A DNA stretch of 64,000 nucleotides, taken from Oikopleura dioica. Its lineage: Eukaryota; Animalia; Chordata. Below, piece after piece: positions 24,780 through 55,393 of this stretch. Under the pieces are notes generated by a model that was given only the letters and a program-made list of their open reading frames with translations, was not told the origin of the DNA and did no database searches. Location of the stretch: the NCBI GenBank assembly GCA_907165135.1, contig OU015566.1, positions 14,446,001 through 14,510,000 of the forward strand. The letters run 5' to 3'. The position numbers were made by a program, and so were the translations under genes. Positions within the stretch are counted from its first letter, which is position 1; every line of letters starts with the position of its first letter.

Positions 24780-25560
24780 ATGTCGGAAACTCAAGAATCT
24801 GAAATTCTGAAAGACCAGATTTTAAACTCAAGCCAAAAAATGAAACCCAACCTGCCCTCTTGCTGCTCTACGGAGACTCAATCGACAAAAAAGACGAACT
24901 CCGACCTAACGACATCGACGTCTATTGGGCTGCTACCACGTCTGGCCCTGGAACACGAGAGTGATCAGATCGCACTACGAAACGGCTACTGATCCCACAA
25001 AGGTTTGATCAAAATTCATTTTCTTCTATGATTTCAAAAAGGAATGGGTCGAGGAGCGAATCCGGCAGTTTCCAGTTCAGGGCGAATTCCTCAACATCAG
25101 TTCAGCCGATGGCCTGTTCGACTTCATATTTGATGTCCAGTAGGGCAAAATCTCTCCCACCGTTTGGTGCCACAACGTTCCAGCGGGAACCTGTGAAGGA
25201 AAGACTGCTGCTGGTTGACTACGACAACTCAGAATTCGGCACTAGAGCTTTTGACCTCGCCTACTACATCATTCACTTCTACGAGAAATTCAACAAAGAT
25301 ATTAACAAAGACTCCTTGAACATGTACTTGCATGAGTACAACAGAATCAGCGAAGTCCGCCAATTTTCAATCGAAGGTACTTTAACCTAAGCAGTGCAAG
25401 GTCTCAAATTCCTCCTAGAGCTGGAGCAAGAAATGAGCTGCGTCTGGCCATATCTTTTCATGGAGCAATCCGTGTTCTACCGCTCAATCGGCGTCGACGA
25501 GGACTTCTGCAACTTCCTGTTCAACTTAATGCGAGAAATAAAGTCTAAGATTTGAAAACT
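24780..25560 (+). pseudogene. Choline/ethanolamine kinase-like (APH/ChoK fold) pseudogene
   Basis: PTVWCHN and LLLVDYDNSEFGTRAFDLAYY resemble ChoK motifs VFCHND and LIDFEY..RGFDI. In-frame stop at ~25140, frameshift after CHN, catalytic Asp missing. Confidence 0.6.
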
Positions 25561-26044
25561 TCGTTTATTAGTAATTAAGAAGGAGAGAATTCTATGAATA
25601 TTTCTTTCAGAACTGCTTTCACTAGAATTTGAATAAACTCCAATTTTATAGATCGCAAAAATATCAGAAAATGCAATTTGAAAATGAATTTTTCTAAGAA
25701 AGTTTGCGAACTGGCCTCTCGCTTCCGGAAAATATCAATCCTTTGTGCTCCTGGCGAGGCAAATTCCCGCTGGAAGTCCTATCAGCAAACACGCTCCGCA
25801 TTTTCGCACCGATTGCTTGATCATCTGCTCGATTTCCTGGTCGGTGGAAATGTGCACAGGCAGCGCGGGTCCGTCGTCTTGACTGGTGCAGCCGGCGTTG
25901 GCGCTGAATTGGCGCGGCGGCCAATCAGCGCCCGCGCTGCCAACTTTCCCACGCGCCGCGTCGAGTTTTCTTTTTTTTTTCGAAAACGGCGAAAATCGCC
26001 GCTTTTTGTTTTTTTTTGAATAAAAGGGCTGAAAATCAGCCCTA

Positions 26045-26190
26045 GAATTTATGAAGAAGGAAGAAGAAGATTTTATTAAAATTTTTTATGAAAAAAAAAG
26101 AGATTTTAGGAAGAAAATTGAAGAAGAAGAAGAAAAAGAGATAAAGAGAAGAAAGGAGAAGAAAAAGGAAGAAAAAAGGTAGGAGAAAAA
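26045..26190. repeat. Purine-rich (GAA/AAAAG) low-complexity tract
   Basis: Runs of gaagaagaagaaaaagagataaagagaagaaaggagaag. Confidence 0.7.
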
Positions 26191-26413
26191 CCTGTGTAAA
26201 AAACCTGAGTCAGGGCTCAGGAAAAGCAAAGAAGAAAAGCCGCTTAGCGGCTTTTTTAGAAAACGAAGCCGAAATCGGCTTCGTTGGAAAAAATAACTTC
26301 GTTTCGTTTTAAAATTCTTCAGAAGCCGATTTCGGCTTCTTTTACTGAAAAAGCTGCTAAGCAGCTTTTATTTTTCACTATTCCTGAGCCCTGACTCAGG
26401 TTTTCTACACAGG
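26191..26413. mobile_element. MITE, CCTGAGTCAGG family
   Basis: CCTGTGTAAAAAACCTGAGTCAGGGCTCAGGAA ... TTCCTGAGCCCTGACTCAGGTTTTCTACACAGG; internal AGCCG-N3/4-CGGCT palindromes. Confidence 0.75.
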
Positions 26414-26473
26414 TTCTTTTAAAATTGGGGGGGAAAGATTTGGGAGAAAAAAAGAGCTATTGAAAGCTCTGTT

Positions 26474-26750
26474 AGGACCCTGACTCAGGCTTTCTTTAAA
26501 AGAGAAAGCCAATTTCTTGTAGCTGAGAATCCCTTTTTTTTTCGCCGGAAGTAAAAAAACAGGGTAGCTCAGTGGCCAGAGCGCGGATTAATTTCCGGGA
26601 CGTGGGTTCGAATCCTACTCCTGCACTTCTGGCGCGAAAAAAAGGATTTTCAGCCGCTAGAAATCGGCTTTTTCTTCTAAAAAACGAAGCCGTTAAGCGG
26701 CCTCTCTTAATTTTAAGGCTAAAAAAGGGGGAAATCTGAGTCAGGGTCCT
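26474..26750. mobile_element. Palindromic element (TIR AGGACCCTGACTCAG) with a tRNA-derived core
   Basis: TIRs at 26474-26488 and 26736-26750. Inner arms GCTGAGAATCCCTTTTTTTTTCGCCGGAAGT / ACTTCTGGCGCGAAAAAAAGGATTTTCAGC flank the tRNA-like sequence. Confidence 0.6.
26560..26625 (+). ncRNA. tRNA-like sequence (pseudo-tRNA or SINE-type Pol III promoter)
   Basis: A box TAGCTCAGTGG, D stem GCTC/GAGC, T stem GTGGG/CCTAC with B box GGTTCGAATCC. Anticodon arm degenerate (CGGA-TTAATT-TCCG); acceptor stem only 5 bp. Confidence 0.6.
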
Positions 26751-28039
26751 GAGAGAGGTCATTTTCGGAGAGCTCGAATGCCTGATTCAGGTTTTTTAAT
26801 GAAAAAAAGGGCTGAGAAGCCGATATTCTCCAGAAAACTGAGTAGAAAACCGGAGTCAGGTTTCAAAAGAGCTAAAATGAAAAGTCCCAATGCTTTTATT
26901 TCGAAAACGAAGCCGCAAGCGGCTTTTACAAGCGATAAAAATGGCTCAGATCAATTCATTCATCTTCCGAACCCACCAAAGAAAGGAGCAGCTAAGAAAG
27001 AAGACCCAAAAGAAAGAAGAAGCGCCAAAGAAAAAGGACAAGCCAAAGAAAGAAAAGAAGGAAAAGAAGCCTCAGCCAGCGAAAGCAGCCGAACCAGAAA
27101 AGCCAGCCGAATTTTCATCCCTAGAAAACAATTCTTTCAGCAAGAGCTTCCGATGTAAACCTCTACTCTCGATCTGCTCTTCACGGTAATTACTGCACGA
27201 TTGCGATCATTCTGCGCGCCGGGTCCCGAAATACAGTCGATATTCCAAACGGCGTCGCTCACTTGGACGAGAAAATGGCCATTGGAGCGACTCTCGATTC
27301 TTTTGCTTCGAGAACGCAAGTCAGAGAGTTTTTGGAGATAATCGGCGGAATTAGCGACTCCCAGACTGACCAAGAAGGGCAAGTAAGCCGCTACAAAGCT
27401 GCTGCCGATCCCAACGAATCTTCGGAAGACGATCTAAAGGTAAAAAACTAGAATTACAGGCCAGAGAAGCATTATTCCTAGCTGCGGACGTGGCAAGACA
27501 AAGCAGAGGAGCTAGAACTGACAAATGAACATTTGGAGAAGAGGCTTGAGAAGATCCGACAAGCGAGAATGAAAATTTGAACCAAGATTTCCATCGAAGA
27601 CAAAATAAAACTCTGCCAGCGAAATTTTGCATCTCTTCAACCTCACTTCACTTTCATGCCTTTGAACGACTCACTCTATGAATTCTTTAAATCGGAAAAA
27701 AATAAAGATATCATAATTCGGCTTCTCGTCTCATAATCCTCAATCTTTACAAGTGAAAAGTACATCACTCATTATTCAACTTCGATGTTCCCATATGCAA
27801 GTGTATCTACAATTTCGCATATAAACTAGTTTGAGTTTAAGACAATTCTGCATGACACAATTCTGCTAAAGTAACAGTACAGGCCTACTTTTTCCAAGAA
27901 TACCTATCTTTATGTTACAAATTGTGACTTTTGTCTACAAAAATAAGCCTTTAGAAATGAGCAAGAAAAGGAGATTCGGCTTTGACAAGAAGCAGGCAAC
28001 GTTTTCGTCTTTGTCCTCGTCGCTTATGATGACTTCCCT

Positions 28040-30595
28040 TCTGCGCCAGAACGAAAGATTCTATTTCGAGTTCGCCGACAGTGACAGTCTGCTTGTGGAG
28101 ATAGAAGAGCAGTACGCTTATGTCGAATGCACGGATTTCACTCTGAAAAGCTGCCGAGGCGCTTCAGGAACAGCATGTCTTTGGCTCGGACGAGTACTGG
28201 ATTGCCGCGGCGACGACGTTCTTCTTTGCGGGCTTCAGGGAGGAACCACTCTGGAAATGCGAAACGAGACGATCGACAATCCGCAGAAAGACGTCTCGCC
28301 AGAAGAGCAGAAGGAACTAGACGCGGAGCTAATCCACGAAATCCGCAACTGCAGCTACCATCTGACCAAGTTGGACTACTTTCACAAGTTCATGCGCCTC
28401 CTGCTCGCCGAGTGCAAGGACATTTTGAAAGTGCCGATGGAGGATGACTCTGGACATCAAGTGCTCATTCGACTGCTCTTTTCGGTGGTTTACACGATCG
28501 TGGAAATCTTGAGAAGACCGCCGGCGCCGTTGGACAGCGAAGAGCGGCAAAAAGTGCACTTTTCTTTCAAGCAGAGTTTGCAGGATTCGGTCGAGTATAT
28601 CGACGATTTGTTGATGATTCTAGTCGATGTTAACTCATCGTCGTTAGGTAAGAGCTGATTATTCAAGCGTCGTTATTGAAAAGTTGTAGCTCCCGTAATT
28701 CCGATGAAAAAAGCTGTCCTTCTGAAGTGGAAATTAACATTGGCGACTTTCGAGAAATGGAACGAAGCAAGAATAAAAACGAAAAGCGATACTTGCAGAA
28801 ATCGAGTTCCCAGCTGATATCATGCGAGAACTGACGCCAGTGACGACTCACATCGACACAATGGTGATGAACATGGCGGAAGGGCAGATTGACTACAACG
28901 GCCCGCAGCACAGACCCAAGCTTCAGCGAAATCAAAAGCGGAATACGAGCGAGCTTGAAGACGAATTCGACAATTTAGATGACGAAAATGCGGAGAATAG
29001 GCCGTCTACTCCCACTCCCACGCTCGGTCGCGGCTCCAGAAGGCCGAGTTTGACGTCTTCACGGCCGACCAGCCCGTCCAGAGAGTCCGAGAGCTCTCTA
29101 GGCCCGAGCTTTGACAGTCCCCTTGCCACGTGGACGTATCCTTATCTTCCCTGGAAGCCGAAAGTGACGCTGAGCGAGATTGACGACTTCGTCAGAATGG
29201 CGCGCTCGAAGTACCTCGACTACAGCTTCAAATACCCAAAAACAGAGGCGCAAATGCTCGCAGCGGTTCAGAATCGTTTCGGACTCCCGAAGCCGACCAG
29301 AACAGCATGAAAATAATGGACAAATACATTTACAAAAGCCTGGCCGATGTACAACGCGAAAAATGGGCGGAAACGGAGAAACACCAACAAGAAAAAAGGA
29401 AACTTCTTCGATCGAAAAGTTGTACGAGCGAATCTGGCAGAATCTATCAATGAATGTGATTTCGCTGTTGAAATAATTGCTGGCAGCGGCGCCGACTGCG
29501 AATAAAAGCGATATATTCATGCAGGATCAGATGGGGCCGCATTCCATTCAATTAGGAAGGGTTCAAAAGCTTTAAAAATCGGGTAGAAATTACTGTTATA
29601 AATTCATTCTCAACCCAAAAATAGAAGGAACGCAGCTCTTCAAACTTCCTGTCATGCTGATCGGACTCGACGTCAGCCGCCACAAAGAAATCGTGACAAA
29701 AGCAATCTCTGGATTTATCCTGCTTTTGATGAAGCACCTCTTATCGCCAAGTTTTTCAACCAGAATATGACCGTCTTCGTAACTCAAAGAAATCAAATTC
29801 CAAAGCTAGATTTACGAAATGCTATTCGAGGTAAATCCCATTTTTCGTCTTGAAAAGGGATCATTTTCTAGGGCTGCCAATCATCCAAGCGCTGATAGAA
29901 CGAGCAACTGAAGAACAGATGCCCTACTGTTGGCGAAACATGTTCTCTTCAATTTGTTTCTTGAGAATACTCGTCAAAATCATGAAAGGAAAGCCTTGGC
30001 GCGTCATATGTTTGGTCAAATACAAAGCCACGAACATTTTCAAAAAGACTCTTTTGGTCAAACACGGTGTTTTTCACATCTACGTTTTGAAAGTCATCAA
30101 GCTTCACGCGAGATTTTTGGGAAGACAGTGGAGGAAAAGTAATATGGACGTGGTTTCCGGAATTAACGGGTATTTGGGCTTTTGGCTTTTTGAAACAATT
30201 TCGATAATTTCAGCATGGTGCGCCATCATTTGACAGACGATTGGGCTTTCTTCAATGCAGAGCCGGACAAGGAATCTTCAGTCCAAGAGGAAAATAAAAT
30301 CACGCAGACCTGCTCCTCTTTCAACAGAATAGTCTACCTCCCCGAAGATCAGGAGTGGACCAAAACTGGACATATCGCCAAGTTCAATGAGGTAATTTTC
30401 ATAATCCTGGTTATATTTTCAAATCTCGGTTCAAGATTCGCCTGCCGCCAAATTTTGGGAGTCGCTACAAAGCTTGGCTGGAAAAGGAGGTCATGAGCGT
30501 CAACGTCGACTGGGATCAACTGCTGAGTCCGGAGAACGCAGCCTCTGTCTATCAAGCCGAAGACCAGCCGGTTGCTGAAACCGCTGCCGCATAAT
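28040..30595 (+). pseudogene. STRIP: Striatin-interacting protein (STRIP/FAM40/Far11) pseudogene
   Basis: FYFEFADSDSLLVEIEEQYAY, PMKKAVLLKWK, LLK*LLAAAPT (TAA at 29474-29476), PLIAKFFNQN, VLKVIKLHARFLGRQWRKSNMDVVS, VDWDQLL match STRIP1 motifs. Several frameshifts and an internal deletion at ~29740. Confidence 0.85.
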
Positions 30596-30725
30596 TTCTC
30601 AAAACCACTGTCCAAATGATGATTTATTACCTAAACGACGTTTCTACTTGTTCAAACTTTTTCCTTGTTAAATACAACTTTCACCGATTCCACTTTTCTT
30701 CTGATGAATCTTCTTTCAGAAAAGG

Positions 30726-31780
30726 ATGATTCGAAGTCGCGTTTTTTCGTCTTTTCTTTCGCGGAGTAGTCGCAGGAACAATCGAGTAGCCCTCCGATCT
30801 CCCTCTTTGGCGAAGTTTGAAAACGAGTCCTTCGTCGAACTCAATAAAGACCCCTTCAAGACCGAAATCAAAAAGATTCCCATTGACGATTTTCGCTCTT
30901 TGACTCTGGTGACGCGCCCATCTCGACATGGAACTCACACGACTGTTGGATTGTGTTTTGCCGCGGGATCGAGGCATACTGGCGCCTTTTCTCCTGGAAT
31001 CAGTCATCTTGACCAAGCGCTCGCTTTTGGGAAATGCAGCTCTTTTGAAAGTCGAAATGAAATTCGGGAACGGGTCAAAACTTTAAAATTCAATCTTTTG
31101 GATTCTCTTTCTTGATTTCAATGATTTCTTAACCTTGAAAAAAGGATTATTTGGACAAATGCGGGGCCATTTTCGACGCTCAAAGCGACCATGAGACGAC
31201 GATCTACGCCTTGTCCATCATGAACAAGCACATTTCAGAGGGAATCAAGGTGCTCTTCGATACGGCATTTCAACCGATGCTCACTGAGAACTGCATTGAA
31301 GAAGCCCTGGCTTCGGTGGAAAATGAACTAAAGCATAACGAATTTGAAGCTGTCCGAGTTAATGAAATTTGCGAAATGGCTATTCATGCAGGCTTCAATC
31401 ACTCGACTCGTGGTCTTGGAATCAAACGAAGCATGTAGATCCGTCTTTTGGGGTTTCTCAATCAAGGTAAACTATCAAGTTTATTTTATCGTGCGAAATT
31501 AATATTCAGTCTTCCATCCGAACCGGCAGTTTGGACGGGTGGAGCGGCGCACTTGATTTCTGGTTCATCTTCGTTCTCGATTCTCGGCGACGAAAGCAAT
31601 TCACAAACTTACTCTTCAATCGCCTGGGAAGCTTTGAGCATCAACGACCCAGATCGCTACACCTGCCACGTTTTACGCGCCATGCTGGGCGGCCAAAGCT
31701 ACTTCGAATCGGGCGGCCCGGGCAAAGGAATCACCAGTCTCTTGTGCACGCAGATCTTGGCGAATACTCGCAGAAATCCG
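30726..31780 (+). pseudogene. PMPCA: Mitochondrial processing peptidase alpha subunit, internally deleted and 3'-truncated
   Basis: Presequence-like MIRSRVFSSFLSRSSRR; AGSRHTGAFSPGISHLDQALAFG; glycine-rich loop MLGGQSYFESGGPGKG. Stop at 31436-31438, middle missing, fused to other sequence at ~31780. Confidence 0.85.
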
Positions 31781-31980
31781 GTTTCTCCGAAGTAGACCAA
31801 CTTCTCTCCGGCTTTCTTTTCGCGCTTGAACAAGACGATGTCGAAAGAGCGGTGAAAATCATGAATCAATCTTCTCGTGAGCTGAGGACTAGCGCTGGTT
31901 TCTTCTTATAATCGACTTGCATAGGTAAGCTCCTTTCCCGACCCCTGTTTCTACATATTTTTTAGTAAATCTTCAACTGC

Positions 31981-33019
31981 CAGAAGCCTCAAAGATCGTC
32001 TCTCCTTTTCCAACCGTCAAGAATCACCAGCTGTACTTCATGAAGAATTCGTCTCGTCGCTAGAAAACCCAATCGTCGTTTACAACCGCGTTCCAAAAAC
32101 TGCCTCCACTGCCTTTACCCATCTTCTCTACGACCTAACCAGAGGTAAGCACTTCTTTCCCGGCTCTTATCTTAAAAACGCACTAGAAAACTCATTCTAC
32201 GTCATCCATGTTAATACAACCGTGCCTAGACAGAATCCCGCAATCATGTCCCTCCAGGATCAAATGCTCCTTCGACAAAATATGACGACTTGGGGCCTTA
32301 CTCCTGCCTTTTATCATGGTCATTTCGCCTTCTTCAACGTCCCAAATGTCTTCTAGATCAATTTGGTTCGGTAAGAGCGCCTTTCAATAGAATTTGTCTT
32401 AAAATATTAAGGAACCCATTTGACCGACTGGTCTCGAACTACTACTTTCTCCGATATGGTGATAACTTCCGAAAAGGACTTCTGAGGAGTAAGAACGGCG
32501 ATACGACGACCTTCAACGAATGCGCGAAGAAAGAGTCAAGCAAAGACTGCTCGATTCAGAAAATGTGGATTCAGGTAACTCGAATCAGGGTCTTCAGATG
32601 TCAGCCGCATTCATGTAGATCTCTTAGAACCTCTCTGTATGATGGCGTAAGGGTCTGAAAATTGCCCCAATGAACGCGATTCTTGATCTAAATTTTAGAT
32701 TCTAAAATTGCAAAGAGTCTTATAGGAGACACCAAAGTGTGCCGCCCGGATAGGAGGGGGTCAAGGGCGAGCCCGACCGCAGCTTTGCCTCATCTGAAAA
32801 TGCTCTTGTTTCTGATAATGCAAGCTTGTAATCGCTGACATTCATCTTTAGATTCCTTATTTCTGCGGCCAAGTTGCAGCATGCTGGGAGCCCGGAAGCC
32901 AGTGGGCTCTTGATAGAGCGAAGCAAAACGTCCTCGAACACTATTTTCTCGTGGGAAAGACCGAAAATCTGATAGAATTTGTTGAACTCCTGGAGAACGA
33001 AATTCCTGCAGTCTTCAAG
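31981..33019 (+). pseudogene. HS2ST1: Heparan sulfate 2-O-sulfotransferase pseudogene
   Basis: VVYNRVPKTASTAFT (PAPS-binding loop), FYHGHF, PFDRLVSNYYFLRYGDNFRKGL, IPYFCGQ..WALDRAKQN. TAG at 32354-32356 where W is expected; 3' end missing. Confidence 0.88.
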
Positions 33020-34489
33020 GTAATTTTCACAAAGAGACGTTCAAAATCCTCGGCAAATATCTCGAGAAGGAGCTGGCCGAGTCAAACATAAAAGTGTGTA
33101 GACTCGCGGCAAGCAAGGTGACGACGCTAAAATCGACCTTCGCAAGCATGAGTAATCAGCTGGGCGTCAAGTACTCTGATGTCAAGTTCATTACCTCCAA
33201 GAATTCCTCGACGCGGAAGTTATGCATCCTGACTCATACTTCCAACTTTCTGGTCGCTGTTTCGAGTGGTCCCTTATTGAGTTTCTTAGGTAGCGTACCC
33301 ATATCAAACTGCATTTGAACTAATCGGTGATTTAGCCATGACTTCTCTGTGGCAAACTACGCCTCAAAGTTAAAGTTTGCAGCTTTGGCGCATTACTCAA
33401 ACTTCTTCGCTTCTTTCGCTTGTTGGCCTCGAGAAAAGTCACTTGAAATTGCGAGAACGATCAGCAAACGAGAAATCGCAATTGTAAACTCTCTTCCTTC
33501 GGTAAAACAAAGTCAGATTTCCTCGGCAGCGGAGTTCGTCGCAGCTATAGAAGAATTCTTCGACAACCACCGTCGACGGTCCAAAGACCGTTTTTCAGGT
33601 AAGATTTAGTCTGCTATTTTCTTTTAAAAAACTTGTTCACTAGGAGGTCAGAAAGGAATTCTGCGGGAGGCTTGATAAAATCGTCGAAAAATACTTGAGT
33701 AAGGCGCGACAAAAAAAGCCTTTCGCGGAGATTTTCTTCTTTTACAAACTCAAACTGGTCGACAACAAGATGGTCCCTCCGATGGTCAAAAACATCGAAT
33801 CCGATTCAGTACACTAAGTAAACGACTCGCAAATTTCAAAATATTGAATATGAAATTCAGGGACGAAAAGATGCAACTGGTAAACGCAGATAGCAGTAAT
33901 CCCAATCTTCCGCCTGTGTGTGTTGCTTTCAAGCTCTTCACTAAAATGGGTTCAATGGTGAATGTCGCAGACTGTGGCTTGACTCCTTCAAGTGTATTCT
34001 TGAAACCGGAAACAAGAAAATCAAGAAGGAAGACTTGGATGCCACCTTTTTTCAATCAGTCAGCGATCTTCAGTTCCTCGGCCTTCTGAAACCCGCACAG
34101 CGAAAAACCGATCACGTCCAGAAAGTCACCTGGGCACTCTGAACATTAGAATTCACTTGTTTATCCACTTATCACTGCCTCTCAAATTAAAAACTAAGCC
34201 TGTCATCCTTTTGACTCTAAAAGGTCACTTTCAGCATGACTCGGGCGAAATGCAAGGATGGCATCAAGAATATCTTGAAGTTGAGTTCTTGCGGCATCGT
34301 TCCACCCGCCTTGTATGAATCTGGCGCGGCTGGTTAGGGCAAGACGCACGTTCCGAAGCAGATCATTGCGGAAAGGCTTCCAGTTTTCGTCGTGATCGAG
34401 CTGGCAAACTTGTTCATCAAGAATCAGCCAGAAGCAGCGACATCTCTCGCTCAACATGAAAAGTTCATACCAGACAATCGCTTGTGCGT

Positions 34490-34880: not shown

Positions 34881-35163
34881 AAAACTCGCCTAACAAATAA
34901 ACCTCCTTATACCATTATTTAAGCGAATGCATCCGACAAAAGCCCCTTCTCCGCGCAGCCGCTGCTTCGAGAACTGGCTCAAGTTCTACAGCATCCTTAC
35001 CTTTAGCCCATTTTTTACCCGATTTCTGATTCCTTCACCTCATTTGCCAATCGACAGCGGTGTCCCGGAGCATCTGAGCCAACTTCCGGCAGACCTCTTT
35101 ACGAAAAGAGTAGAGAAAGGATCCCATATTTTTTTGTTCAGACAGTGCGTTATCGGATTGAAA

Positions 35164-37394: not shown

Positions 37395-38071
<677 letters not shown>

Positions 38072-38735
38072 TTGCGTTGCGCTGAAAATATCTCGAAGGT
38101 TCTCTATCCAAATGACAATTTCTTCGAAGGAAAAGAACTTCGTCTCAAGCAAGAGTATTTCGTTATCTGTGCTACGCTTCAGGACATTGTCAGGCGATAC
38201 AAGAGCTCAAAGTTCGGATGCAGAGATTCTGTCAGAACTCAGGTATTCTTTTCTAATCGTACAAGGGCGTAAGGGTGTAAGGCGCTGAGGTTATGCATGC
38301 ATAACCAGGTTATGCACTCTTAATAAAAATCATATTAATTGATATTTAACAGGTAGTTCAAGTGCGCTTCGCGAAAAGGACCTGTGCGTACACAAACCAT
38401 ACCGTTCTACCTGCTCTCGGCCAGTAAAGATGCTCGAGAATATGCTTCCTCGTCATTTGCAGATCATTTATCTGATCAACGCCCGTCATTTGAAGGACGT
38501 CGCAAAAGGTGAGTACAGTTTTATCCAGTATTGTCTCTAATACAGTGAATAAGCCTTCCCAAATGACTCATCGAAGCTTCGGGAGATGTCTCTGATCAAA
38601 GAGGACGGAGAAAAGCGAGTGAACATGGCATACCTCGCGATCGTTTGCTCACGCCGTCAATGGCGTTGCCGCCATCCACTCCCAGATCATCATCGACGAT
38701 ACCTTCAAAAACTTTTACGAGATGTCTTGCCGACT
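38072..38735 (+). pseudogene. PYG: Glycogen phosphorylase internal fragment
   Basis: [62 protein letters not shown]. Contains deletions and frameshifts. Confidence 0.92.
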
Positions 38736-38799
38736 TGGGAATAAAGCTATGCATGTGCAAAGATGAACAGTTTTAGGCGAAACAAACAAGTGGCAAAAC

Positions 38800-40875
38800 A
38801 AAACGAATGGCACAAAATTCTAGCAGACGTTGAGAAGTTTGAGTTCATGACAACAGTTCAAGTAAGAAAATTCTAGCACCAGAAGAATATTAACCAGCAT
38901 GATTCTTAGGAGTACACGATCCCAATCTTTCTGCAAAACAAAGATGTGATGTGCGAAGCCGTCACCGGCTCTGGAAAGACGCTGGCCTTCCTTTGCCCGC
39001 GCTGCACAAAATGATCTCTTCCGGGGCAAAGGACAAGAACTCCTTCATCGTCATTTCTCCGACCAGAGAGCTCGCCAATCAAACTCACAAAGGTACTATT
39101 CTAATGCTGATTTACTCGTTTATCGGATATTTTCTAGTTTTGCTGCGATTTCTCGATGTTCTTGAAAAGTACACGGCGATGACCTGCATCGGCGGAGTAA
39201 CAAAGATCCAGGAAGACATGGAAATGCTGGAAAAGTCGACTCCAGATGTGATCATCGCGACTCCGGGAAGAATGGACGATTTGATTAAACGATCCGATGT
39301 GCTCAAGGCGAAGCTGAAGACTGTGGAGATGTTGATTATCGACGAAGCGGACCAGGTTTTTGAACCCTTTCCTGCGAATTAACAAAGCCTTTTTTAAGAT
39401 TTTGGACATTGGTTTCGAAAAAGCGATCAATTTCATTTCGTCAAATCTTCTAAAGCAGCGGCGAACCGGTCTTTTCTCCGCGACGCTGAACGAAAACGTC
39501 CTCCGTCTGAAAAAGGCTGGTCTGCGTCATCCCCACTCCGTCTCGGCCAAAGAAAAGCGCAAGAGAACCTGTCCACGCCTCAAGAACTCAAACTGCTCTT
39601 CTCAGTCGTGGAGCCGCGCCACAAACTCAGTTATCTCGTTTCGTTGTTGAAAAAGCGGCGAAAGTCGAAGAGCGTCGTTTATTTTCTCACTTCCGACCAG
39701 GTCGACTATTTCCACCAAGTTTTGAGGCAGCTGGTCAACTATCCAGTGATTAAGTGCCACGGAAAGAAGAACCAGAAATTGAGGTCGAAAGCGATCAAGG
39801 AATTTACCGACAGATCTGGCGGAGCTGTTCCAGGAAACTCGCTACAAAGTCATTTTCTTTGAGGTCACGTGACGTGATTTCGCTGACCAAAATGGTAGCA
39901 AAAGATGCTTTAGACGCTGTTCTTTCCGTCGATATACAGTTTTTCACTGTCATATGCTACAGTTTACCCGCCAGAGGGGTCAAAATCAAGAGGTACTAAT
40001 AAGCGGAACCCTGAGTCAGGGTGCTGATAGAGCTGTCCAAAACTAACGTGCATCTGTATAAAACCCTGACTCAGGTTTCCACACAGGCTCCCGAGCCCTG
40101 AGCATCACTAACCGTTAATTAATAATGTTAAATCTCTGATGATTTCTGAATGTAGCGAATTGTAACAGTTACGACGGATCTGCTCTGCCGCGGCGTCGAT
40201 ATTTCCGGCGGCGTCGACTACGTCATCCAGTTCGATCCTCCAACCTTTGCTCCAAACTTTGTCCGCCGCGCTGGCAGAACCGCTCGCGCTGGAAAAAGCG
40301 GAGAAAACCTGGTCTTGGTGACTCCGTCGGAGCACGAGCAAAACTACCTCGAATTCAAACTCAACCAAAAAGTCGGCGACATGGTCGTGTTAAAAGAAGA
40401 TTTCGAGATTTTGGAACTGGAGAAGGTCAGGGAGATCCAGTTGAAGGACTAGAGGAACTTTGAATACGCGCAGAGGGCGTTCCCGAGCTTTTTTTGTGCT
40501 TACAAAGGTAACTACTGTACTACGATAATGAAATACAGTAACAAATCTTTTCTACAGAGATTTCTTTCGATAACAAATCCATTAGGCGCTGCTCTGATTG
40601 GTCAGAAATGACTCTAATCGGAAATTTTCATTTTGACCAATCAGTAAGCTTGATGGATCAATTCATTATCAAAAGAAGTCGTTGTAGAAGATTTTCTTTT
40701 CTGAAATCGATTTCTAGCGCACGAGTGCAAATACATTTTCCGCGAAAAAGAGCTGATCAAAAGTATTAGTGATTATGCGCTCATGTTCGGTCTTTTGAAA
40801 ATGCCAAAAATGGCCGAGCTGAAGAACAAGGAGTACACTGGCTTTACCAATAGCGACGTTGATACAGCATCTCAA
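38800..40875 (+). pseudogene. DDX55: DEAD-box RNA helicase DDX55/Spb4 copy, damaged and 3'-truncated
   Basis: [68 protein letters not shown] at 40450-40452; motif VI His replaced by Arg; fused to a STRIP fragment. Confidence 0.85.
40010..40105. mobile_element. CCTGAGTCAGG-family MITE remnant in a DDX55 intron
   Basis: ACCCTGAGTCAGGGT ... ACCCTGACTCAGGTTTCCACACAGGCTC. Confidence 0.6.
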
Positions 40876-41185
40876 ACCACGTCCACCAATTTGAATATCT
40901 TTCCCATCACTTGTACGGCTCAAACTGCTTTCCGCTAATCGCCAAGTTTTTCAACCAGAACATGACGGTTTTCGTCACTCAAAGAAATCAAATTCCAAAG
41001 GTGGACTTGCGAAATGCTTTTCGAGGTAATTGACCGTTTTTCGACTTAAAAAAGACCAATTTCTAGGGCTGCCGATCATCCAAGCGCTGATAGAACGAGC
41101 AACTGAAGAGCAGATGCTCTACTGCTGGCGAAACATAATCCCTTCGATTTGTTTCTTGATAATTCTCGTGAAAATCATGAAAGAA
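40876..41185 (+). pseudogene. STRIP: Second STRIP fragment
   Basis: NHVHQFEYLSHHLYGSNCFPLIAKFFNQN.. plus the following intron and exon; homologous to 29745-29990. Confidence 0.85.
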
Positions 41186-41187
41186 AA

Positions 41188-41248
41188 CGTCGTTCTCGAT
41201 TCTCGGCGACGAGAGCAATTCGGAAACTTACTCCTCAATCGCCTGGGA
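41188..41248 (+). pseudogene. PMPCA: ~60-bp PMPCA fragment
   Basis: gtcgttctcgattctcggcgacgagagcaattcggaaacttactcctcaatcgcctgggaa closely matches 31571-31630. Confidence 0.8.
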
Positions 41249-41321
41249 AAAGCCAATCAATCGCCAATCCGATGGAGCAGAACTTATGGAACCACTTCAT
41301 TTTTAAAGAGTTTGAGGACAG

Positions 41322-43440
41322 GGGAAGTTGAGCGAATCTGCCGAGAATCGAATTGCTACGAGCCTGAAAAAGTCAAGAACTTCTTGAAAGAGCAGAAAAT
41401 GTGGGACCAACTTCCTTTGATAATCGTCTGCGATCGATTCGACTTTGTCCACGACTCGGCTCTCCATCTTTACAGAAATAATCTCCAGAAATACATCGAG
41501 ATCTACGTCCAGAAAATTAACTCATCTCGACTCCCTCAGGTCATTGGTGGGCTTTTGGATGGCGACTGCGAGTCAGATGTGATCAAGAGCCTTATCATGG
41601 TTGTCCTAGGTCAGTTCTCTACTGATGACCTTGTTCGAGTAGCGAAACCGATTGAAGCTCCTTCTCCCGTGGCGAGAGTCGCGAATAGCTGAAGACTGCC
41701 AAGAACCCGCCAAGATCTTGCTTTGGCCAAGGTCTACATTGATGCCAACAACCCTTAGCGATTCCTTCGGGAGAATCCGCTGTTGTCGGTAAATACTGCG
41801 AAAATCAAGATCCTCATCTCGCATGTATTGTGTACGAGCGTGGAATGTGCGACGATGAACTCATCAAGGTCTGCAACGAAAACTCATTGTTCAAGAACGA
41901 AGCGCGATACCTTGTCCAAGAAAAGACTCCGAGATATGGGCTTAGGTTCTTGTTGACGATAACCCACACAGACGATCTGTCATCGATCAAGTTGTCCAGA
42001 CCGCTCAGAGGATCCTGATGGCATCTCTGAGGCTATCAAGATTTTCATGGAAGCTGACTTACCAAACGAGTTGATCGAGCTTTTGGAAAAGGTCGTTCTC
42101 GAGAACTCCGTCTTCTCCGATCATCGAAACTTGCAGAACTTGCTCATCCTCACTGCAGTCAAGGCTGATACTACCCGCGTCATGAACTATATCTCTCGAC
42201 TTGACAACTATGATGCTCCAGACATTGCTGAAATCTGCATCAACAATGAGCTCTACGAAGAAGCATTCGCCATCTTCAAGAAGTTCGACGCCACGACTTC
42301 TGCTATGGAAGTCTTGATCAACAACGCCAAGAATCTCGATCGATCGATTCCTTCTCTAGTTCTTATTTTGAAACTAGATTAAAGATAAAATCTTTCAACC
42401 TCCCTAATTTGATTGTAAAGGAGTCTAACTGTCGATTCAGATCCGAGAAGCTTACCTTGAAACGGAGCTCTGCTAATCGTTTGCCAAGACGAACAGACTC
42501 GCTGAGCTTAAAGAGATGTACCAGGCTGTCAAGGTCCTCTACGCCAGCATTTCCAACTTCTACTCTCCTCAAACTTGGCGGGTGTCAGGCTACTGTCGAA
42601 GCTACAAAGAAGGCCAATTCAACCCAAACATTGAAGGAAGTCTGCTTTTCTTGCGTCGAAAACGATGAGTTCCGACTTGCTCAACTCTGTGGCCTCAACA
42701 TCGTTGTCCATGCTGACGAACTCGACGATCTTATGAGCTATTATCAGGATCGTGGATTTTTTGAGGAACTCATCACTATGCTCGAAGGCGCCCTTGGCCT
42801 CGAAAGCGCTCACATGGGCATTTTTACAGAGCTCGCTATTCTTTACTCGAAGTACAAGCCTGAGATGATGAAGGAAAACCTCGAGCACTTTTGGTCTCGT
42901 GTCAATCTTCCAAATGTCCTCCGAGCTGCCGAGACTACTCACTTGTGGGCCGACCTTTTCTCCCTTTAGGATAAGTACGAGGAGTACGACGACGCCATCT
43001 TGACAATGATGAAGCACCCAACTGTCGCCTGTAAAGAGGGACTCTTCAAGGACATCATCAAAAAGGTCGGCAACATCGAGCTTTACTACAAGGCTCTCGA
43101 GTTCTACATCGACTTCAAAACTCTTCTTATCAACGACTTGCTCAATGCTCTTAGCCCACGAATCGACCACACCCGAACTGTTACCAATGTTATTGGCCTT
43201 GCTCTTCGACTTAAAAAGGTCTAACTCCTCGAATTCAGACGTATTGCTGCTTATCTTTACAAGAAGAACAACAGGTTGGTTTCTTTTTAGTAAACATTTC
43301 TTACCGATATTTCTGTAGATAGGCAATCTGTCGAGCTTTGCAAGAAGGACGATCTTTTCAAAGAGGCAATGGAGTACGCTGCCGAAAGCCGTGATACCCA
43401 ACTTGTGGAAGAACTTGCGAACTGGTCCCTCAAAAAAGAA
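41322..43440 (+). pseudogene. CLTC: Clathrin heavy chain fragment (central and distal leg), multiple lesions
   Basis: [101 protein letters not shown]. Stops, frameshifts and internal deletions. Confidence 0.95.
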
Positions 43441-43619
43441 CCTATTTTTTGCAATGGACACGCTGTGCAATTACTCAACATCTTACAGCAGCTTCTCTTA
43501 GTTCAAAGACGAATTCTTTTCTAGTTATTTATTATTCCAAATAAACCTGTGAAATAAACAAGTTCCAAAGACAAACATTATTCCAAAAAAATACATCACT
43601 CTGATTTTAGAAAAATGTC

Positions 43620-44640
43620 GCATTTTATGGGCGATTTCATGAAATCGTCCGAGAGTTAAACTAACCCTTACTTCAACGATGGTGGCACTGGAATGCCTCC
43701 GACCGAGGAGGAGATGATGGAGAAACAAAGAAAACCAGAGAAGAAGAAGCAGGAGATTAGCTATGGAGACGATGTGGAAGCGATGTGGGCGGAGTGAGAG
43801 GCAGAAGTTGAGCCTGAAAGTAGGCCTAAGAAAAGATCCAAGCATGAGGGCAAATGTAAGTCACTCTTATTGGAGTATAATTATACTGTTTAAATTATAC
43901 CTACTATATAATTTATACTGTATAATCTATCTAATATTTAGCTGCTGCTGAAATCAAAGAAATCAGAAACAAACTCACTGGAAAGCTGATGCGTGCCGAT
44001 CTCAAAGGCAACAAAGAAAAAACTGCGAAAATTTAAAAAGAAATCGACGAATTACCAGATGAAAACACAATCGTCGTTCAAAAATACGATGCCCGTGGTC
44101 GAATCCGTCCAAGTAACCAGAAACGCGAATCTGATATTTCTGCTCTTCTTCGTGATGAAAAGAATGACGATGGAGGAATGGGTTAGTTTAATGATAGTCT
44201 TCCATGTCTTCAAGGTCTTTTTTTAGCTTCGGATATGGCGCTGAAGAAGAACTCTTCGACGGCACAAAGACAAGAGGGAAAAAAGAGAAGCCTCATGCAG
44301 AAGAAGACCGTGAACGAGCAAAGAGCAGGATGATTCATAGAAGCCTCGAAAACTGTCGGTTTTGCTATTCGAATAAGGTAGAGAGTGAACGCAATTGAAA
44401 GCAAGAATTGACGTATTCTTAGAAACTCCGCGACTCAATTTGCTGGGTTGGCCAACACGTGTACCTTGCTCTTACAGGCTCTGAACCGATGGCAGAAGGC
44501 CACTGCATCATCGTTACAAAAGAACACTATCGAAATCTGCCGTCATGCGATGAGGATGTCGCACGCGAGATCCTCAACCTGCGAAGAATGCTTACTGGGT
44601 ATTTCAAAGCAAAGAACGATACAGAATTTTCCAACGATTT
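43620..44640 (+). pseudogene. CWF19L2: CWF19-like protein 2 fragment
   Basis: LENCRFCYSNK, MYLALTGSEPMAEGHCIIVTKEHYRNLPSCDEDVAREILNLRRML. Stops upstream; truncated. Confidence 0.75.
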
Positions 44641-44887
44641 TTCCAGCAACTGGCTTATGCGCCGCCGAGTCTGCGATTTATCGCTGCTATGCCGTCTGAT
44701 GCACACGAGAAGAAATTCGTTACGCACCCGGTAAGTTTTTAGACAGATAGAAAGTCCCGTGGTTTGTCTTTTGGACGCGCCGTTAAAAGTTTTATGTTTT
44801 TCTTGAATACGCGATTTTGAATCGATGAATCTGGGTTTACGACGTATTCTGATCAATTACTACTCGACTGACCTTATTCTTTCCAGG

Positions 44888-45221
44888 GAGATCTAATCGT
44901 CACAGCTACCGATGGTCTGTTCGACAACGTCCCCGACGAAGTGCTTCTCCAGGAACTCTCGTATCTTCCCCACGCCGATCAAATCCACACTCAAGGTCTG
45001 CCTCCTCCTTCCTCTTTCAACCCTTTAACTCCGCTTCTTCAGATCTGGAGCGCACGGCAAAGTGCCTGGCCTCGCGCGCGCACAAGAACGCGCTCAACAA
45101 GTCGTACGTTTCTCCCTCCGCGCTCGCCGCCAAAAGCGCTGGCTTCCACTACACCGGCGGCAAAATGGACGACGTAACGGTCATCGTATCCGTTGTGTCT
45201 GACCTCGGCACTGAAGTGTAG
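44888..45221 (+). pseudogene. PPTC7: PP2C-family phosphatase PPTC7, C-terminal fragment
   Basis: GDLIVTATDGLFDNVPDEVLLQEL..GGKMDDVTVIVSVV..*; N-terminal part absent. Confidence 0.85.
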
Positions 45222-46269
45222 CTTTTTAGCTTTTCTTTTCTTTTTTCTAAAACTTCCGTCTAAAAATTCATGATTCAAAATGCTCTCTTCGCCTTTCTCT
45301 CTCGTCTTTGTTTATTCTCTTTCTATCAACATATTCTTCTCTACTGAAATTTCCAAGGCCTACTTTTGACTTCATTTAAATTGAAGAACTAATGATGAAC
45401 AAACGGGTTTCTGACCCCTTTTTTGAGGTGTTCAACTTTGCCTTTTCTTGGTCCTTGAAGATCAAGCTGTCAATTCTTCAGCATTTATTTATTTAGGATG
45501 TTTTTAAAATGAAACAGTTTTGGCCTTCTTTTCTGGTGCCAAAATGACTTTACTCCTTTCTCCTTCGAGAAAGAAAAAATACTCTCATTTCAAAATTGAA
45601 AACTCTCCCAAAACAACATATTCTCTTTTACCTCGTTGCTTGTGCTACTATCAAACCATATTTTTCCCAAGTCAAGTCCCGCGGAGAACAAACTCTAGCG
45701 ACATCTGAACGAGAAAACGGTTCGGATCAGGAGTTTCCCGCGGCCGCTTGATTTCGGAATGAAGTGAAACTTGAGTGGTTACGAATTTAACTTATTTATT
45801 TGTATAAAGGAATACACTATTCGAAAATTGAAAGCTTTATCTGTTCTTTGCTGTTGTAGTAACAGCAGCTTGTTTATTTTGACGCATTTTTATAGCACAA
45901 TTTTTGAAGCACTGCAGTTTGAAAATTATTCTAGAGCTCGTCATGATGAAGTAGGGAGCTTCCTCAGTGCGTAGCAGGCGATTCAGTCAAGGCATCATAA
46001 GCTTTTGCCCGTTTTTCTTCTTGATAAACCGTCTCTATCGAGAAGATCGAGCAGGGCAAAAATATCATTTTGCAGCAATTCAACGACAAACTGTATTTTT
46101 CAAACTTCCCGTCTCTTTGACATTCGAGGACCATCGTCCACTTTTCTAACCTTCTATTTTTGTAGAGCCGTCAAGACAAAACTCTTAATTCTTCTTTGAT
46201 ACTGAAAAAACAATCAAAAAAAGCATGTCTGATATTTAGAAAAGAATGAAATGAGCGGAATCGAGTATT

Positions 46270-46760
46270 CAGAAATTCTGGATCGCTCGAACGCATGGCT
46301 CGCGGGAAATAAGCGAAGGTACTGAGGACCAAGGATTAGTGTAACTAATGAACTGTCTAGTGAAGGAAGTGTTCTTCATCAGCAACATTCTGCAATTCGA
46401 AATGATCCACTTCATCGGCCAGCTGCAGTACTACATTCACTTCGAAATCAGCGAGACATCTTGGGCAGTCTTCGCCGAAAAGGTAAGTCCTTCTTGGTCG
46501 CACCAAACCGGATCATTTGCAGGTCGAGATTTAGCAAATGACCTGAATGAAGTGATCATCGCGCACAATGCCTTCCTCAACGAGCTGGAACAGGGCTAAC
46601 TGCTCGCGGACTCTCTCTGGGACAAGATAAAATCACTCAGAATTGCGAACATCTTTTGCCTCCATTGCCAAATCAAGTGCCTTTTCCGAGGATGATGAGC
46701 TGCTAGAGAAAGAACGCAGAAACTCCTTCAAGAACGAAATGTTCAAGCACAAGGTAAAAA
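46270..46760 (+). pseudogene. TUBGCP3: Gamma-tubulin complex component 3 (GRIP2 domain) fragment
   Basis: FEMIHFIGQLQYYIHFEISETSWAVF..DLNEVIIAHNAFLNELEQG*LLADS matches GCP3 [31 protein letters not shown]; in-frame stop. Confidence 0.75.
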
Positions 46761-47611
46761 AGAGATTCAATTCAAAATGTAACGATTTCCCAGTGTTCGG
46801 TGACCACCTGCCGGACGACTTACCAGAAAATCCTCCCAGCCAGTCCTTTCTCTTCATGTGTCCACACGCGGCGATGCTGCTCAAAAGAAGAATTCAGAAG
46901 TGCCCCTACAGTGTTGACAAGTACAGTTACACTCGAAAAGCTGAAAGTTTAATCTAGTTTCTTAGGCAATTAGCGCCCCTGACGAATATTTTGATGAACC
47001 TCTCAGTTTCGCAGCTGCAGGAAACGCTGCTGGAAAAGTGACGCAATGGGAAATCTCTGGAAAGGACATCTTCGACCTCGATTACGATATCGACGATTCC
47101 ATCGAGGTAAAAACGGCTGTTTTTCAGTGGTCATCAATTTGATCGTTTTAGTGTATTCCAGACGTAACGATGGACAACGAGTCGGGAATGCACGAGCACT
47201 GGATGTTCTTGAACAAAGAAGTCACCGTTTCCAGCGAAAAACAAATCGGCCAAAACCCGAAGTCGTTTATTTGTTCAAAGATATGGTGGATTTCTGGTGA
47301 GTCCAATCGAATCTATTGACAGGACCCCTAACGCTTCTGACTAGTGACACGGCGAACGATGAAATGATGAAGGTGTCGCATAGTTTGTACGCGGCGCTGC
47401 TCATTCACGAGCCCCTCCACTCTTTGGTGGAGCAATTCGAGCGCCTCTTTCCCGAACTGCGCCTTTCCGGCTTCCGAGAGAAGCTCGAGCCCAGATGCGC
47501 GTCACTCTTCGCAGCAGAGAGCATTTCGCTGACGATGATCGAAGTTGTCGACTCGTTGCTGTCTGCCGCCTTTCCCAGCGTGGAACTGTTCTTTTCCTTC
47601 CTCATTCCATT

Positions 47612-47955
47612 GCTGCCTGCCTCTAACCTGTTACGACCTCATGCGACCCGACGTTGTTCTCGAGCAATCGTGGGGAAACGGAATCCAGGACTTTGCCATG
47701 CCTTACTTTATCTAGGTAACAAATGATGATGATTTTTATGCTTATCTTGAATAAGCCGAAGAGCCCGAGCAGCCGATGATCATGGCGCCTCAACTCATGT
47801 TGGCGAACTCTGCACATATGCCCGGCATGGCAGGAGCACCGGTAGAAGTCCTTCTCAAGTTTTATTTTTGATAAACTTTTCAGAATCCATTCGGTCAACC
47901 TGAGATTGGGTTGCCTGCCAAACTAATTCGGTGGAATGCCTGGACAATTCAAAGC
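47612..47955 (+). pseudogene. CLTC: Clathrin heavy chain C-terminal fragment, continuation of 41322-43440
   Basis: [33 protein letters not shown] then EPEQPMIMAPQLMLAN; matches [37 protein letters not shown] and PQLML. Confidence 0.88.
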
Positions 47956-55350: not shown

Positions 55351-55393
55351 ATTTAACGGTCTATTGAAAATATCCAAACTTGATTATCAAAGA

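Follow-up and report, generated by a model that had tools for sequence, protein, structure and literature searches.

A patchwork of decayed, intron-retaining gene copies near the long-arm end of chromosome 1 in Oikopleura dioica

A stretch of 64,000 nucleotides of the Oikopleura dioica OKI2018_I69 assembly (C4:14446001-14510000, hereafter the window), whose last base is 23 kb short of the right (long-arm) end of chr1, was analyzed. In its 23-kb part 24780-47955, about twenty genes are represented as decayed DNA copies with working originals elsewhere in the genome. This region is probably a subtelomere-type duplicon patchwork (a “gene graveyard”) that was copied as DNA, spread between chromosome arm ends, and whittled by deletions of the microhomology-mediated end joining (MMEJ) type. 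The structure is of a known kind and is found here in a new setting. Positions without a scaffold prefix are those of the window; the scaffolds are written C4 for chr1, C5 for chr2, and C1 for PAR, and C2 is taken by us to be XSR. The patchwork structure was read from the assembled sequence alone.

Gene content and parental loci

DNA matches elsewhere in the genome were found for 93% of the stretch 24780-47955, with a mean best identity of 92% (matches 75–99%). The duplicated patchwork extends beyond this stretch and occupies at least 18134-56233. Pfam searches were run on stop-free pieces of the + strand, one at a time and without joined or spliced gene models. They identified Peptidase_M16 at 27125-27448 (E = 5e-8 for the piece 27110-27377) and at 30708-31792, DUF3402/STRIP at 29835-30230, Sulfotransfer_2 at 31925-32655 (below the curated cut-off), ORC_WH_C at 33703-34086 (below the cut-off), DHHC at 34338-34760, DEAD and Helicase_C at 38903-40449, five Clathrin repeats at 41030-43521, CwfJ_C_1 at 44423-44731, and GCP_C_terminal at 46345-46596. 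A single open reading frame (ORF), 37721-38269, holds both Epimerase and glycogen Phosphorylase matches (the latter covering 164-208 of 713). The ChoK-like and PP2C identities were confirmed through ORFs of a paralogue or parent; the ChoK-like fragment belongs to a multi-copy family, and the ORF of its paralogue matches Choline_kinase, APH, and EcKL. The XRCC1 piece (46035-46293) is 89% identical to the N-terminal region of XRCC1.

The original prediction, made from the window sequence without database searches, had named twelve genes present as broken copies, and all twelve were found by Pfam and DNA matches as broken, intron-keeping copies on the + strand. Beyond these, ORC3, a coiled-coil gene, XRCC1, two more M16 pieces, a paralogue of the telobox gene, and a second STRIP-PMPCA remnant were recognized, and the CLTC copy proved to consist of three separate pieces.

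Parental genes, which the original prediction had proposed to seek by BLAST, were located as apparently intact originals for 17 pieces; thus, the window copies are not the sole copies. The STRIP and PMPCA genes, together with the next gene, have their parent locus at C1:6.0923-6.0987 Mb (-), and CLTC at C1:16.0257-16.031 Mb (-). Other apparently intact parents are those of DDX55 (C2:0.383 Mb, +), HS2ST (C4:0.658 Mb, +), ORC3 (C2:1.949 Mb, +), DHHC (C5:5.758 Mb, -), GALE (C5:6.958 Mb, +; FNTA is its upstream neighbour), PYG (C2:9.000 Mb, +), two M16 pieces (C1:6.107 Mb and C1:6.095 Mb, both -), the coiled-coil gene (C2:9.698 Mb, -), PPTC7 (C1:6.154 Mb, +), GCP3 (C2:0.052 Mb, -), and the SMAP-Fip1 block (C1:14.437 Mb, +). 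An open CWF19L2 gene is located at C4:5379128-5379388 (C4:5.379 Mb, +).

The copies are 80–97% identical to their parents. Stops are present in the window matches of CLTC, GCP3, and CWF19L2, and the parents of CLTC (a 982-aa open frame) and CWF19L2 are open. Single parental exons of STRIP, DDX55, and CLTC are spread over two or three frames of the window sequence; motif I of the DDX55 copy is frameshifted relative to the apparently intact parent, and the STRIP-PMPCA segment contains frameshifts and stops. Since stops and frameshifts occur in the copies and apparently intact parents exist elsewhere, the reading of the region as ordinary dense genes or an operon was rejected. The same TGA and TAG stops were found in all three CWF19L2 copies (window, C2, and C1), which therefore descend from one pseudogene.

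Alignments to the parents continue unbroken through introns and intergenic spacers, including the STRIP-PMPCA spacer. Eleven internal deletions of 58–2197 bp were found, all exonic and without GT..AG ends, and the truncation, internal deletion, and intron retention reported earlier for the copies are thus borne out. Partial splicing was rejected as the source of the deletions because none of the eleven corresponds to an intron; one further apparent deletion is a 746-bp element with terminal inverted repeats (TIRs) that is present in the parent. Three deletions were assigned to ORC3 (298, 415, and 233 bp, with 12- and 10-bp fillers in piece A2), four to CLTC, and one to DHHC. The STRIP-PMPCA segment and the next 129 bp stem from at least 6.3 kb of C1, thinned by exonic deletions of 63 and 153 bp and by a 2197-bp deletion. 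The serial capture of small pieces that had been proposed need not be assumed, since several pieces derive from larger segments with more than one gene (as long as 6.3 kb or more) that deletions trimmed afterwards.

DNA-level copying is favoured over copying from pre-mRNA because introns and spacers were kept, the GALE copy includes an intergenic flank, and the convergent ChoK-like and UPF0489-like genes were copied together as one segment with genes on both strands. In addition, no A-runs were found at the 3' boundaries of the pieces, and no spliced-leader remnant was matched, which is a weak negative. Processed, reverse transcriptase-mediated copies are not supported on account of the kept introns, the absence of poly(A) at boundaries, and the convergent pair. 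Of the two routes left open earlier, DNA-level copying or copying from unspliced RNA, the first therefore stands and the second is not favoured.

Sister patchworks at arm ends and centromere gaps

Collinear versions of the patchwork were identified at C2:361-14809(-) (89–97% identical), C1:6.080-6.099 Mb(-), C5:5.744-5.763 Mb(-), and C4:5.159-5.182 Mb(+). The mosaic, which the original prediction had suggested looking for at other chromosome ends, thus recurs at the start of XSR and beside all three centromere gaps. These sister versions keep partly the same seams at 89–96% identity and differ from one another by independent deletions; for example, the 233-bp ORC3 deletion of the window is not found at C4:5.179 Mb. 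The convergent ChoK-like/UPF0489-like pair is also present at C5 and C4, and both relatives of the PLC block (Table 1) adjoin centromere gaps.

The constant downstream partner of most versions is a gene of the PDZ-telobox family, a member of which terminates three of the four sister versions; none was seen at C4:5.159-5.182 Mb. Copies are located at C2:78-3933(-), C1:6080454-6084406(-), C5:5744606-5747751(-), and C5:5666367-5670222(+), and further copies at C1:7883953-7888461(+), C1:7926959-7931667(-), and C4:5123021-5126047(-).

In the window, the patchwork points toward a 72-bp satellite, which passes the window end, meets an N gap, and resumes; (TTAGGG)n begins about 130 bp away at C4:14532522. 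The predicted location at a chromosome end, with the genes pointing to the terminal array, is consequently confirmed. The centromere gaps lie at chr1 5,191,657, chr2 5,707,009, and PAR 6,029,625 (PMC8008620), and the internal sister versions are 10–130 kb from them. Satellites or (TTAGGG)n face the gap in five of the six flanks. The left flank of the chr2 gap carries a 254-bp satellite related to the 72-bp unit of the window, followed by (TTAGGG)n at the edge, and the right flank begins with 1.24 kb of (CCTAAC)n. The right flank of the PAR gap begins with 238 bp of (TAACCC)n; the left flanks of the PAR and chr1 gaps carry a 51-bp satellite with one TAGGGTTA per unit. Ordinary telomeres are present at the outer chromosome ends. 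Since telomere repeats flank the gaps, each chromosome arm looks like a telomere-to-telomere unit.

Head-to-head telomere repeats were observed to flank the chr2 and PAR gaps (C5:5703010-5711508 and C1:6025626-6034124), with 51-, 53-, and 254-bp satellites sharing the TAGGGTTA core behind them. No description of head-to-head telomere repeats at these gaps was found among the papers searched. At chr1, the 51-bp satellite (C4:5187571-5191098; 69 copies, 99% identical, one CTAGGGTTA per unit) abuts the gap on the same strand as the adjacent patchwork, mirroring the 72-bp array of the window.

The six main versions point to their own arm or contig end. At the start of XSR, no end repeat was found. 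Exceptions to the polarity are the telobox site C4:5123021-5126047 and the pair at C1 7.88/7.93 Mb.

Seams and repair signature

A hand count based on BLAST end-points gave about 22 seams and deletions. Microhomology of 1–9 bp was present in 12 and filler of 1–21 bp in 8. The join at 31760 is the 2197-bp deletion with the 6-bp microhomology GCGAAT, the seam between DDX55 and the second STRIP remnant (STRIP') shows an imperfect 9-bp microhomology, and the HS2ST/ORC3 seam shares about 6 bp, 10 nt inside an intron. Junction microhomology, which the original prediction had named for inspection, is therefore present and is compatible with template switching or with end joining. As read from sequence, the seams and deletions are the apparent signature of alternative, microhomology-mediated end joining. 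According to Deng et al. 2018, as cited in PMC11067885, O. dioica lacks classical non-homologous end joining (NHEJ) and uses MMEJ; microhomology and filler deletions are expected because classical NHEJ was lost.

Three donors were re-used in an interleaved manner. ORC3 piece A1 (27954-28061) is followed by piece A2 (from 33027), which begins 198 donor bases further along. PMPCA breaks off at C1:6094655 (window 31765) and continues from C1:6094660 (window 41263); in this second remnant, 41190-41249 repeats 31571-31630, and the last piece (PMPCA') matches C1:6094660-6094588. In CLTC, the body (to 43436) is followed by the 3' untranslated region (UTR; 43438-43516) and, 4 kb on, by the last exons (47611-47969), which end exactly at the start of the UTR piece; they reach the stop codon at about C1:16025650, a continuation judged by eye. 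Such interleaving could be produced by replicative template switching or by unequal exchange between sister patchworks.

Orientation bias

According to the original prediction, every fragment from 17 to 56 kb is on the + strand. This holds for nearly all of them, the exception being a 350-bp UPF0489-like fragment (25548-25899), which is the sole minus-strand piece recognized. The ten longest minus-strand ORFs gave no real match. For ten distant donors (HS2ST, ORC3, the coiled-coil gene, GALE, PYG, DDX55, CLTC, CWF19L2, GCP3, and SMAP-Fip1), all ten pieces have the same sense (two-sided binomial p ~0.002), with GCP3 counted as distant at only ~40 kb from the XSR-start version. Two further pieces come from the C2 sister, an amine-oxidase (LSD1-like) one that shares this sense and a collagen one that is reversed, which gives 11 of 12 (p ~0.006).

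Apparently intact genes beside the internal versions are already co-oriented (XRCC1, a mitofilin-like gene, STRIP, and PMPCA on C1; CLPB, ADA2, and DHHC on C5). Block copies keep this orientation; therefore, part of the co-orientation is inherited through block duplication between arm ends. For the sense bias of the distant donors, we favour a regional constraint at arm ends over a capture machine.

Break-induced replication (BIR) at a chromosome end with template switching had been suggested earlier as a source of the bias. HS2ST, DHHC, STRIP-PMPCA, the M16 donor at C1:6.107 Mb, and CLTC point to their own centromere, and GALE, PPTC7, CWF19L2, and SMAP-Fip1 point away, so that at least five of the nine placed donors are of opposite polarity. 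Classical BIR and tip translocation preserve centromere-to-telomere polarity; therefore, with donor polarity mixed, neither explains the bias and both were rejected. The template-switching part of that suggestion is compatible with the microhomology at seams.

A speculative reading, to which we assign a low probability, is that the common sense of the pieces is the footprint of a strand-specific process at arm ends. Capture may copy one strand of transcribed donors, for example, when break ends are primed on R-loops or on forks stalled by transcription running head-on; or selection may act in a long one-directional transcription or replication domain running to the telobox genes and the TTAGGG end. 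If true, this process would be a new rule for the accumulation of gene fragments in an animal with a scrambled genome. The coincidence of the 3' end of the DDX55 copy and the end of CLTC piece a with exact exon ends was also considered, and two cases are too few to build on.

Origin of the patchwork

The subtelomere-type duplicon explanation is the one that we consider probable. The parents, the decay of the copies, the copying at the DNA level, the shared blocks, and the seam signatures are seen directly; the succession of steps and the enzymatic process behind them (end joining or replicative template switching) are inferred. Segments of ~0.1 to >6 kb were copied as genomic DNA; the donor loci number at least 17 and are spread over all four large scaffolds. 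Exons, introns, and spacers were copied together, at times with two or three adjacent genes in one segment and in one case with a convergent pair. The copies would have landed in the repeat-rich domain upstream of the PDZ-telobox genes at arm ends. Multi-piece blocks would then have been exchanged or duplicated among the chr1 long-arm end, the XSR start, and the three centromere-gap regions, most of them retaining polarity to the satellite/TTAGGG end. Decay has affected all copies, through point mutations and through numerous deletions marked by microhomology or filler, the outcome to be expected of alternative end joining.

Several observations weigh against this explanation. The history of events is reticulate. 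The same sense of ten out of ten distant donors is not predicted by a duplicon model. No internal (TTAGGG)n was found at block boundaries, the sole TTAGGGTTAGGG of the window being at 7611, outside the mosaic. Finally, ORC3, PMPCA, and CLTC are each split, the second half resuming 0–200 bp from where the first stops, which suits replicative template switching better than independent insertions.

The best-surviving alternative, although an unlikely one in our estimate, is that one or a few replicative template-switching events (microhomology-mediated break-induced replication, MMBIR, or fork stalling and template switching, FoSTeS), in a process resembling chromoanasynthesis at a broken arm end or a collapsed fork, joined most of the pieces at once, and block duplication later spread the result. 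It would account for the seam microhomology (2–9 bp) with short fillers and for the interleaved re-use of the ORC3, PMPCA, and CLTC donors, features of MMBIR/FoSTeS that were found here, and parent–copy identities are mostly 87–96%. However, the sisters differ in the subset of pieces that they hold and in their independently acquired deletions, a simple deletion within a single donor accounts for many of the junctions, and the SMAP-Fip1 block is clearly younger (96–97%). As to a single replicative event, the sisters differ in content and deletions, yet the interleaved order would hardly arise through simple insertions; donors can also become interleaved when sister patchworks exchange unequally.

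It is very improbable that the fragments are the cargo of a Helitron or other gene-capturing transposon (Pack-TIR, Maverick), with the units being copies of the element, even though co-oriented, intron-keeping pieces of many genes recur at several loci. No transposase, Rep/helicase, polymerase, or integrase was found among the ORFs of the window, in agreement with the earlier observation that transposase and Rep/helicase genes are missing there. The Helitron_like_N domain (PF14214) had no match in the genome, a weak negative since control genomes gave no match either. The mosaic has no flanking inverted repeats, and long inverted repeats within 16000-57100 are present only in the elements 21483-22949 and 26186-26418. 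No common 5' or 3' termini, such as the 5'-TC and 3' hairpin-CTRR ends of Helitrons, were seen among the copies, homology ends varying from copy to copy (no systematic terminus scan was made), and the sites are confined to arm ends. Helitron capture, raised in the original prediction to explain the orientation, is accordingly not supported, and neither is an origin from a TIR transposon.

We give an equally small chance to copying from unspliced, partly polycistronic pre-mRNAs by a template-switching reverse transcriptase, by which same-sense chains would arise automatically. Every distant-donor piece is indeed sense, a two-gene piece like STRIP-PMPCA could stem from an operon transcript, exact exon 3' ends terminate both the DDX55 copy and piece a of CLTC, and the STRIP and DDX55 copies begin a few codons past the start codon. 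Against this route stand the convergent pair in one segment, the 320-bp intergenic flank of the GALE copy, the retention of every intron, and the lack of poly(A) and, more weakly, of a spliced leader. Besides, LINE (long interspersed nuclear element) and Penelope elements are nearly absent from this assembly (PMC8008620).

Chimeric joining of reads from unrelated genes at a hard-to-assemble chromosome end is extremely unlikely: the assembly is a Nanopore one with a reported 1.3% error rate, and two N gaps with a possibly misplaced 16-kb piece lie just past the window, but the copies differ from their parents by 3–20% and include shared disabling mutations, whereas read chimeras would be near-identical, and the same seams recur at other loci at 89–96% identity.

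Features of the region and additional observations

The pieces of the patchwork and the adjoining features are listed in Table 1.

Table 1. Features of the window from left to right; parental and related loci are given with the strand in brackets
Feature	Window position	Strand	Matches and remarks
PLC gene block, left part of the duplicated region	18134-21106	+	92.5-93.6% to C4:5159639-5162609(+) and C1:6048502-6051424(-); PI-PLC motifs in ORFs
ChoK-like kinase fragment	24862-25539	+	84-86% to C5:5761806-5762449(-) and C4:5141369-5142012(+); stop seen by tblastn
UPF0489-like gene, 3' fragment	25548-25899	-	tblastn with ORF of C5:5760993-5761676(+), residues 105-228; stops and frameshift
M16 peptidase fragment	27110-27377	+	91% to C1:6106920-6107189(-); parent is a 182-aa open M16 ORF
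Coiled-coil gene piece	27373-27932	+	90% to C2:9698343-9698930, coding strand minus; 5-bp overlap with the preceding M16 piece
ORC3-locus piece A1	27954-28061	+	88% to C2:1948685-1948792; 198 bp upstream of piece A2 in the donor
STRIP (codon ~12 to end), spacer, and 5' two-thirds of PMPCA, one segment	28063-31765	+	90-96% to C1:6098654-6094655(-)
Remnant of a gene that lies 2.2 kb past PMPCA in the donor locus	31760-31888	+	94% to C1:6092457-6092329(-)
HS2ST fragment	31889-33029	+	89-90% to C4:657740-658993(+)
ORC3 3' part and downstream sequence, piece A2	33027-34515	+	93-96% to C2:1948990-1951413(+)
DHHC palmitoyltransferase fragment	34513-35081	+	87-91% to C5:5758266-5757531(-); 158-bp deletion; parent retains the DHHC motif
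Telobox paralogue B, inside the patchwork	35088-37106	+	Direct repeats with PDZ-telobox gene 48082-52063, 87-98%
GALE: 320 bp of 5' intergenic flank, start codon, and 5' half	37109-38076	+	87-94% to C5:6958407-6959538(+)
PYG, two internal pieces around a ~100-bp dispersed repeat	38080-38810	+	94-97% to C2:8999542-8999734 and 8999869-9000320(+); parent with long open frames
DDX55, first exon to an exon end, without the 3' ~500 bp	38814-40867	+	92.4% to C2:382823-384890(+); 10 indels
Second STRIP-PMPCA remnant (STRIP', PMPCA'', PMPCA'), heavily deleted	40859-41330	+	STRIP' 90% to C1:6096912-6096578
CLTC piece a, body (C-terminal clathrin repeats)	41323-43436	+	80-92% to C1:16028952-16026170(-); deletions of 319, 58, and 245 bp
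CLTC piece c, 3' UTR	43438-43516	+	96% to C1:16025629-16025551; begins right after the end of piece b in the parent
CWF19L2 pseudogene fragment	43513-44625	+	96% to C2:6150-4926; 86% to C1:7934672-7933184
PPTC7-like PP2C fragment and 3' flank	44625-45834	+	91.7% to C1:6154168-6155401(+); 9 indels; a cullin gene follows the parent
Block with XRCC1 piece and GCP3 pieces	45460-47752	+	95% to C1:6087639-6085304(-); GCP3 donor C2:51206-53392(-), 88-95%
CLTC piece b, last exons to stop codon	47611-47969	+	94-95.5% to C1:16026110-16025738; 78-bp deletion; 4 kb away from piece a
PDZ-telobox gene A, constant downstream partner of most patchwork versions	47969-52063	+	952-aa ORF 48602-51457
Youngest duplicated block (SMAP, Fip1, neighbours)	52188-56233	+	96-97% to C1:14436647-14441446(+); Pfam SMAP (below curated cut-off) and Fip1
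72-bp satellite	57062-64000	+	96 copies, 100% matches, one TTAGGGTTA per unit; the patchwork points toward it

Several mobile or repetitive elements were noted in the region. A 1.5-kb element with inverted arms of 108–141 nt (21483-22949) is inserted in a + strand gene fragment and has copies at C1:13.278, C4:12.888, and C5:4.495 Mb. A small foldback repeat with 97-nt arms, 88% complementary (26186-26418), is dispersed in over 60 copies, which occur in both orientations. The 746-bp element in the parent of 52188-56233 (C1:14437817-14438562), absent from the window copy, has perfect TIRs of ~39 bp and TTAAG on each side, and looks like a recently mobile TTAA-targeting miniature inverted-repeat transposable element. 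The segment 56234-57045 represents the end of an element ~6 kb long that is dispersed through the genome (at least 15 pairs); it has terminal inverted repeats of 630 bp and contains 57-bp arrays, and in the window it is cut off by the 72-bp satellite.

Beyond the window (C4:14510001-14533022), the satellite enters an N gap at 14510994; 16 kb with genes on both strands follow, then a second N gap (14527652-14528151) and the satellite again. The 16-kb gene piece, lying between two N gaps within one satellite, may be a matter of scaffolding placement.

Among the sister loci, a 5-kb tandem duplication of the convergent ChoK-like/UPF0489-like pair (C4:5167427-5177300) adjoins the chr1 centromere gap, and in the DHHC copy at C4:5182045-5182344 the catalytic DHHC is changed to DHHL. 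The GALE copy contains, at ~37497-37520, a short palindromic insertion (ATCATAGGCCTAGCCTATGAT) that is not in the parental coding sequence and resembles snap-back synthesis during end joining. Two ORFs cross seams, one from GALE into PYG (37721-38269, 183 aa) and one from STRIP' into PMPCA into CLTC (41030-41689, 220 aa); the latter frame is open in the C2 copy too (206 aa, C2:6302-6919). These ORFs are probably due to chance in young copies, and chimeric peptides from them are possible.

Significance

The gene order of O. dioica is the most scrambled known among animals, and precise molecular breakpoints hinting at the scrambling mechanism were not found by Plessy et al. 2024 (PMC11067885). 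The patchwork and its sisters hold dozens of young seams and deletions, the signature of which is microhomology, fillers, and a strong deletion bias. Both partners of a seam survive in one genome; therefore, the repair signature is readable base by base. In addition, the centromere-side arm ends in this assembly carry the same domain as true chromosome ends, which bears on the origin of the three chromosomes and on the possible sites of action of the PDZ-telobox proteins. The orientation bias, an oddity that is concrete and open to testing, merits follow-up together with the telomere-like architecture of the centromere-side arm ends.

Comparison with known systems

Gene graveyards are known at the chromosome ends of other species, and pericentromeric duplication in humans and other primates is described by a two-step model. 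Like the subtelomeric and pericentromeric duplicons of humans and primates, the O. dioica patchwork is a mosaic of genomic, intron-containing gene fragments and pseudogenes with originals elsewhere. Human subtelomeric duplicons form blocks common to several chromosome ends, with polarity to the telomere kept (Ambrosini et al. 2007, PMC2323237). In O. dioica, blocks are likewise present at several ends with kept polarity, and, as in human and primate duplicons, block-to-block identity exceeds copy-to-parent identity. Unlike in human duplicons, the pieces are 10–1000 times smaller, packed without spacer, nearly all of one sense, and subject to heavy decay by deletion; there are no TTAGGG islands at block boundaries, and the centromere-side arm ends participate as though they were telomeric.

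The resemblance to gene capture by plant Helitrons and Pack-MULEs consists in chains of unrelated gene fragments that keep introns, are often co-oriented, and occur in several copies. In contrast to these elements, the patchwork showed no transposase or Rep, termini, target-site duplications, or flanking inverted repeats, and is confined to arm ends.

With respect to repair, deletions and joins that carry 1–9 bp of microhomology and short fillers, some of them palindromic or copied from nearby sequence, resemble O. dioica MMEJ as reported for Deng et al. 2018 in PMC11067885. Unlike the experimentally induced breaks of that study, the patchwork events are natural, fixed, and multi-kilobase, and join different chromosomes. 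Similarity to MMBIR/FoSTeS includes microhomology seams, short templated insertions, and donors revisited near the point of departure. Those events are usually local, single, and of mixed orientation, whereas the donors of the patchwork are located on other chromosomes and the sisters point to several rounds.

Finally, long co-oriented gene rows at chromosome ends are also formed by telomere-attached trains of retroelements, namely, Drosophila HeT-A/TART and rotifer Terminons. These carry reverse transcriptase and have their 3' ends facing the centromere, whereas the patchwork is free of reverse transcriptase and its pieces point to the chromosome end.

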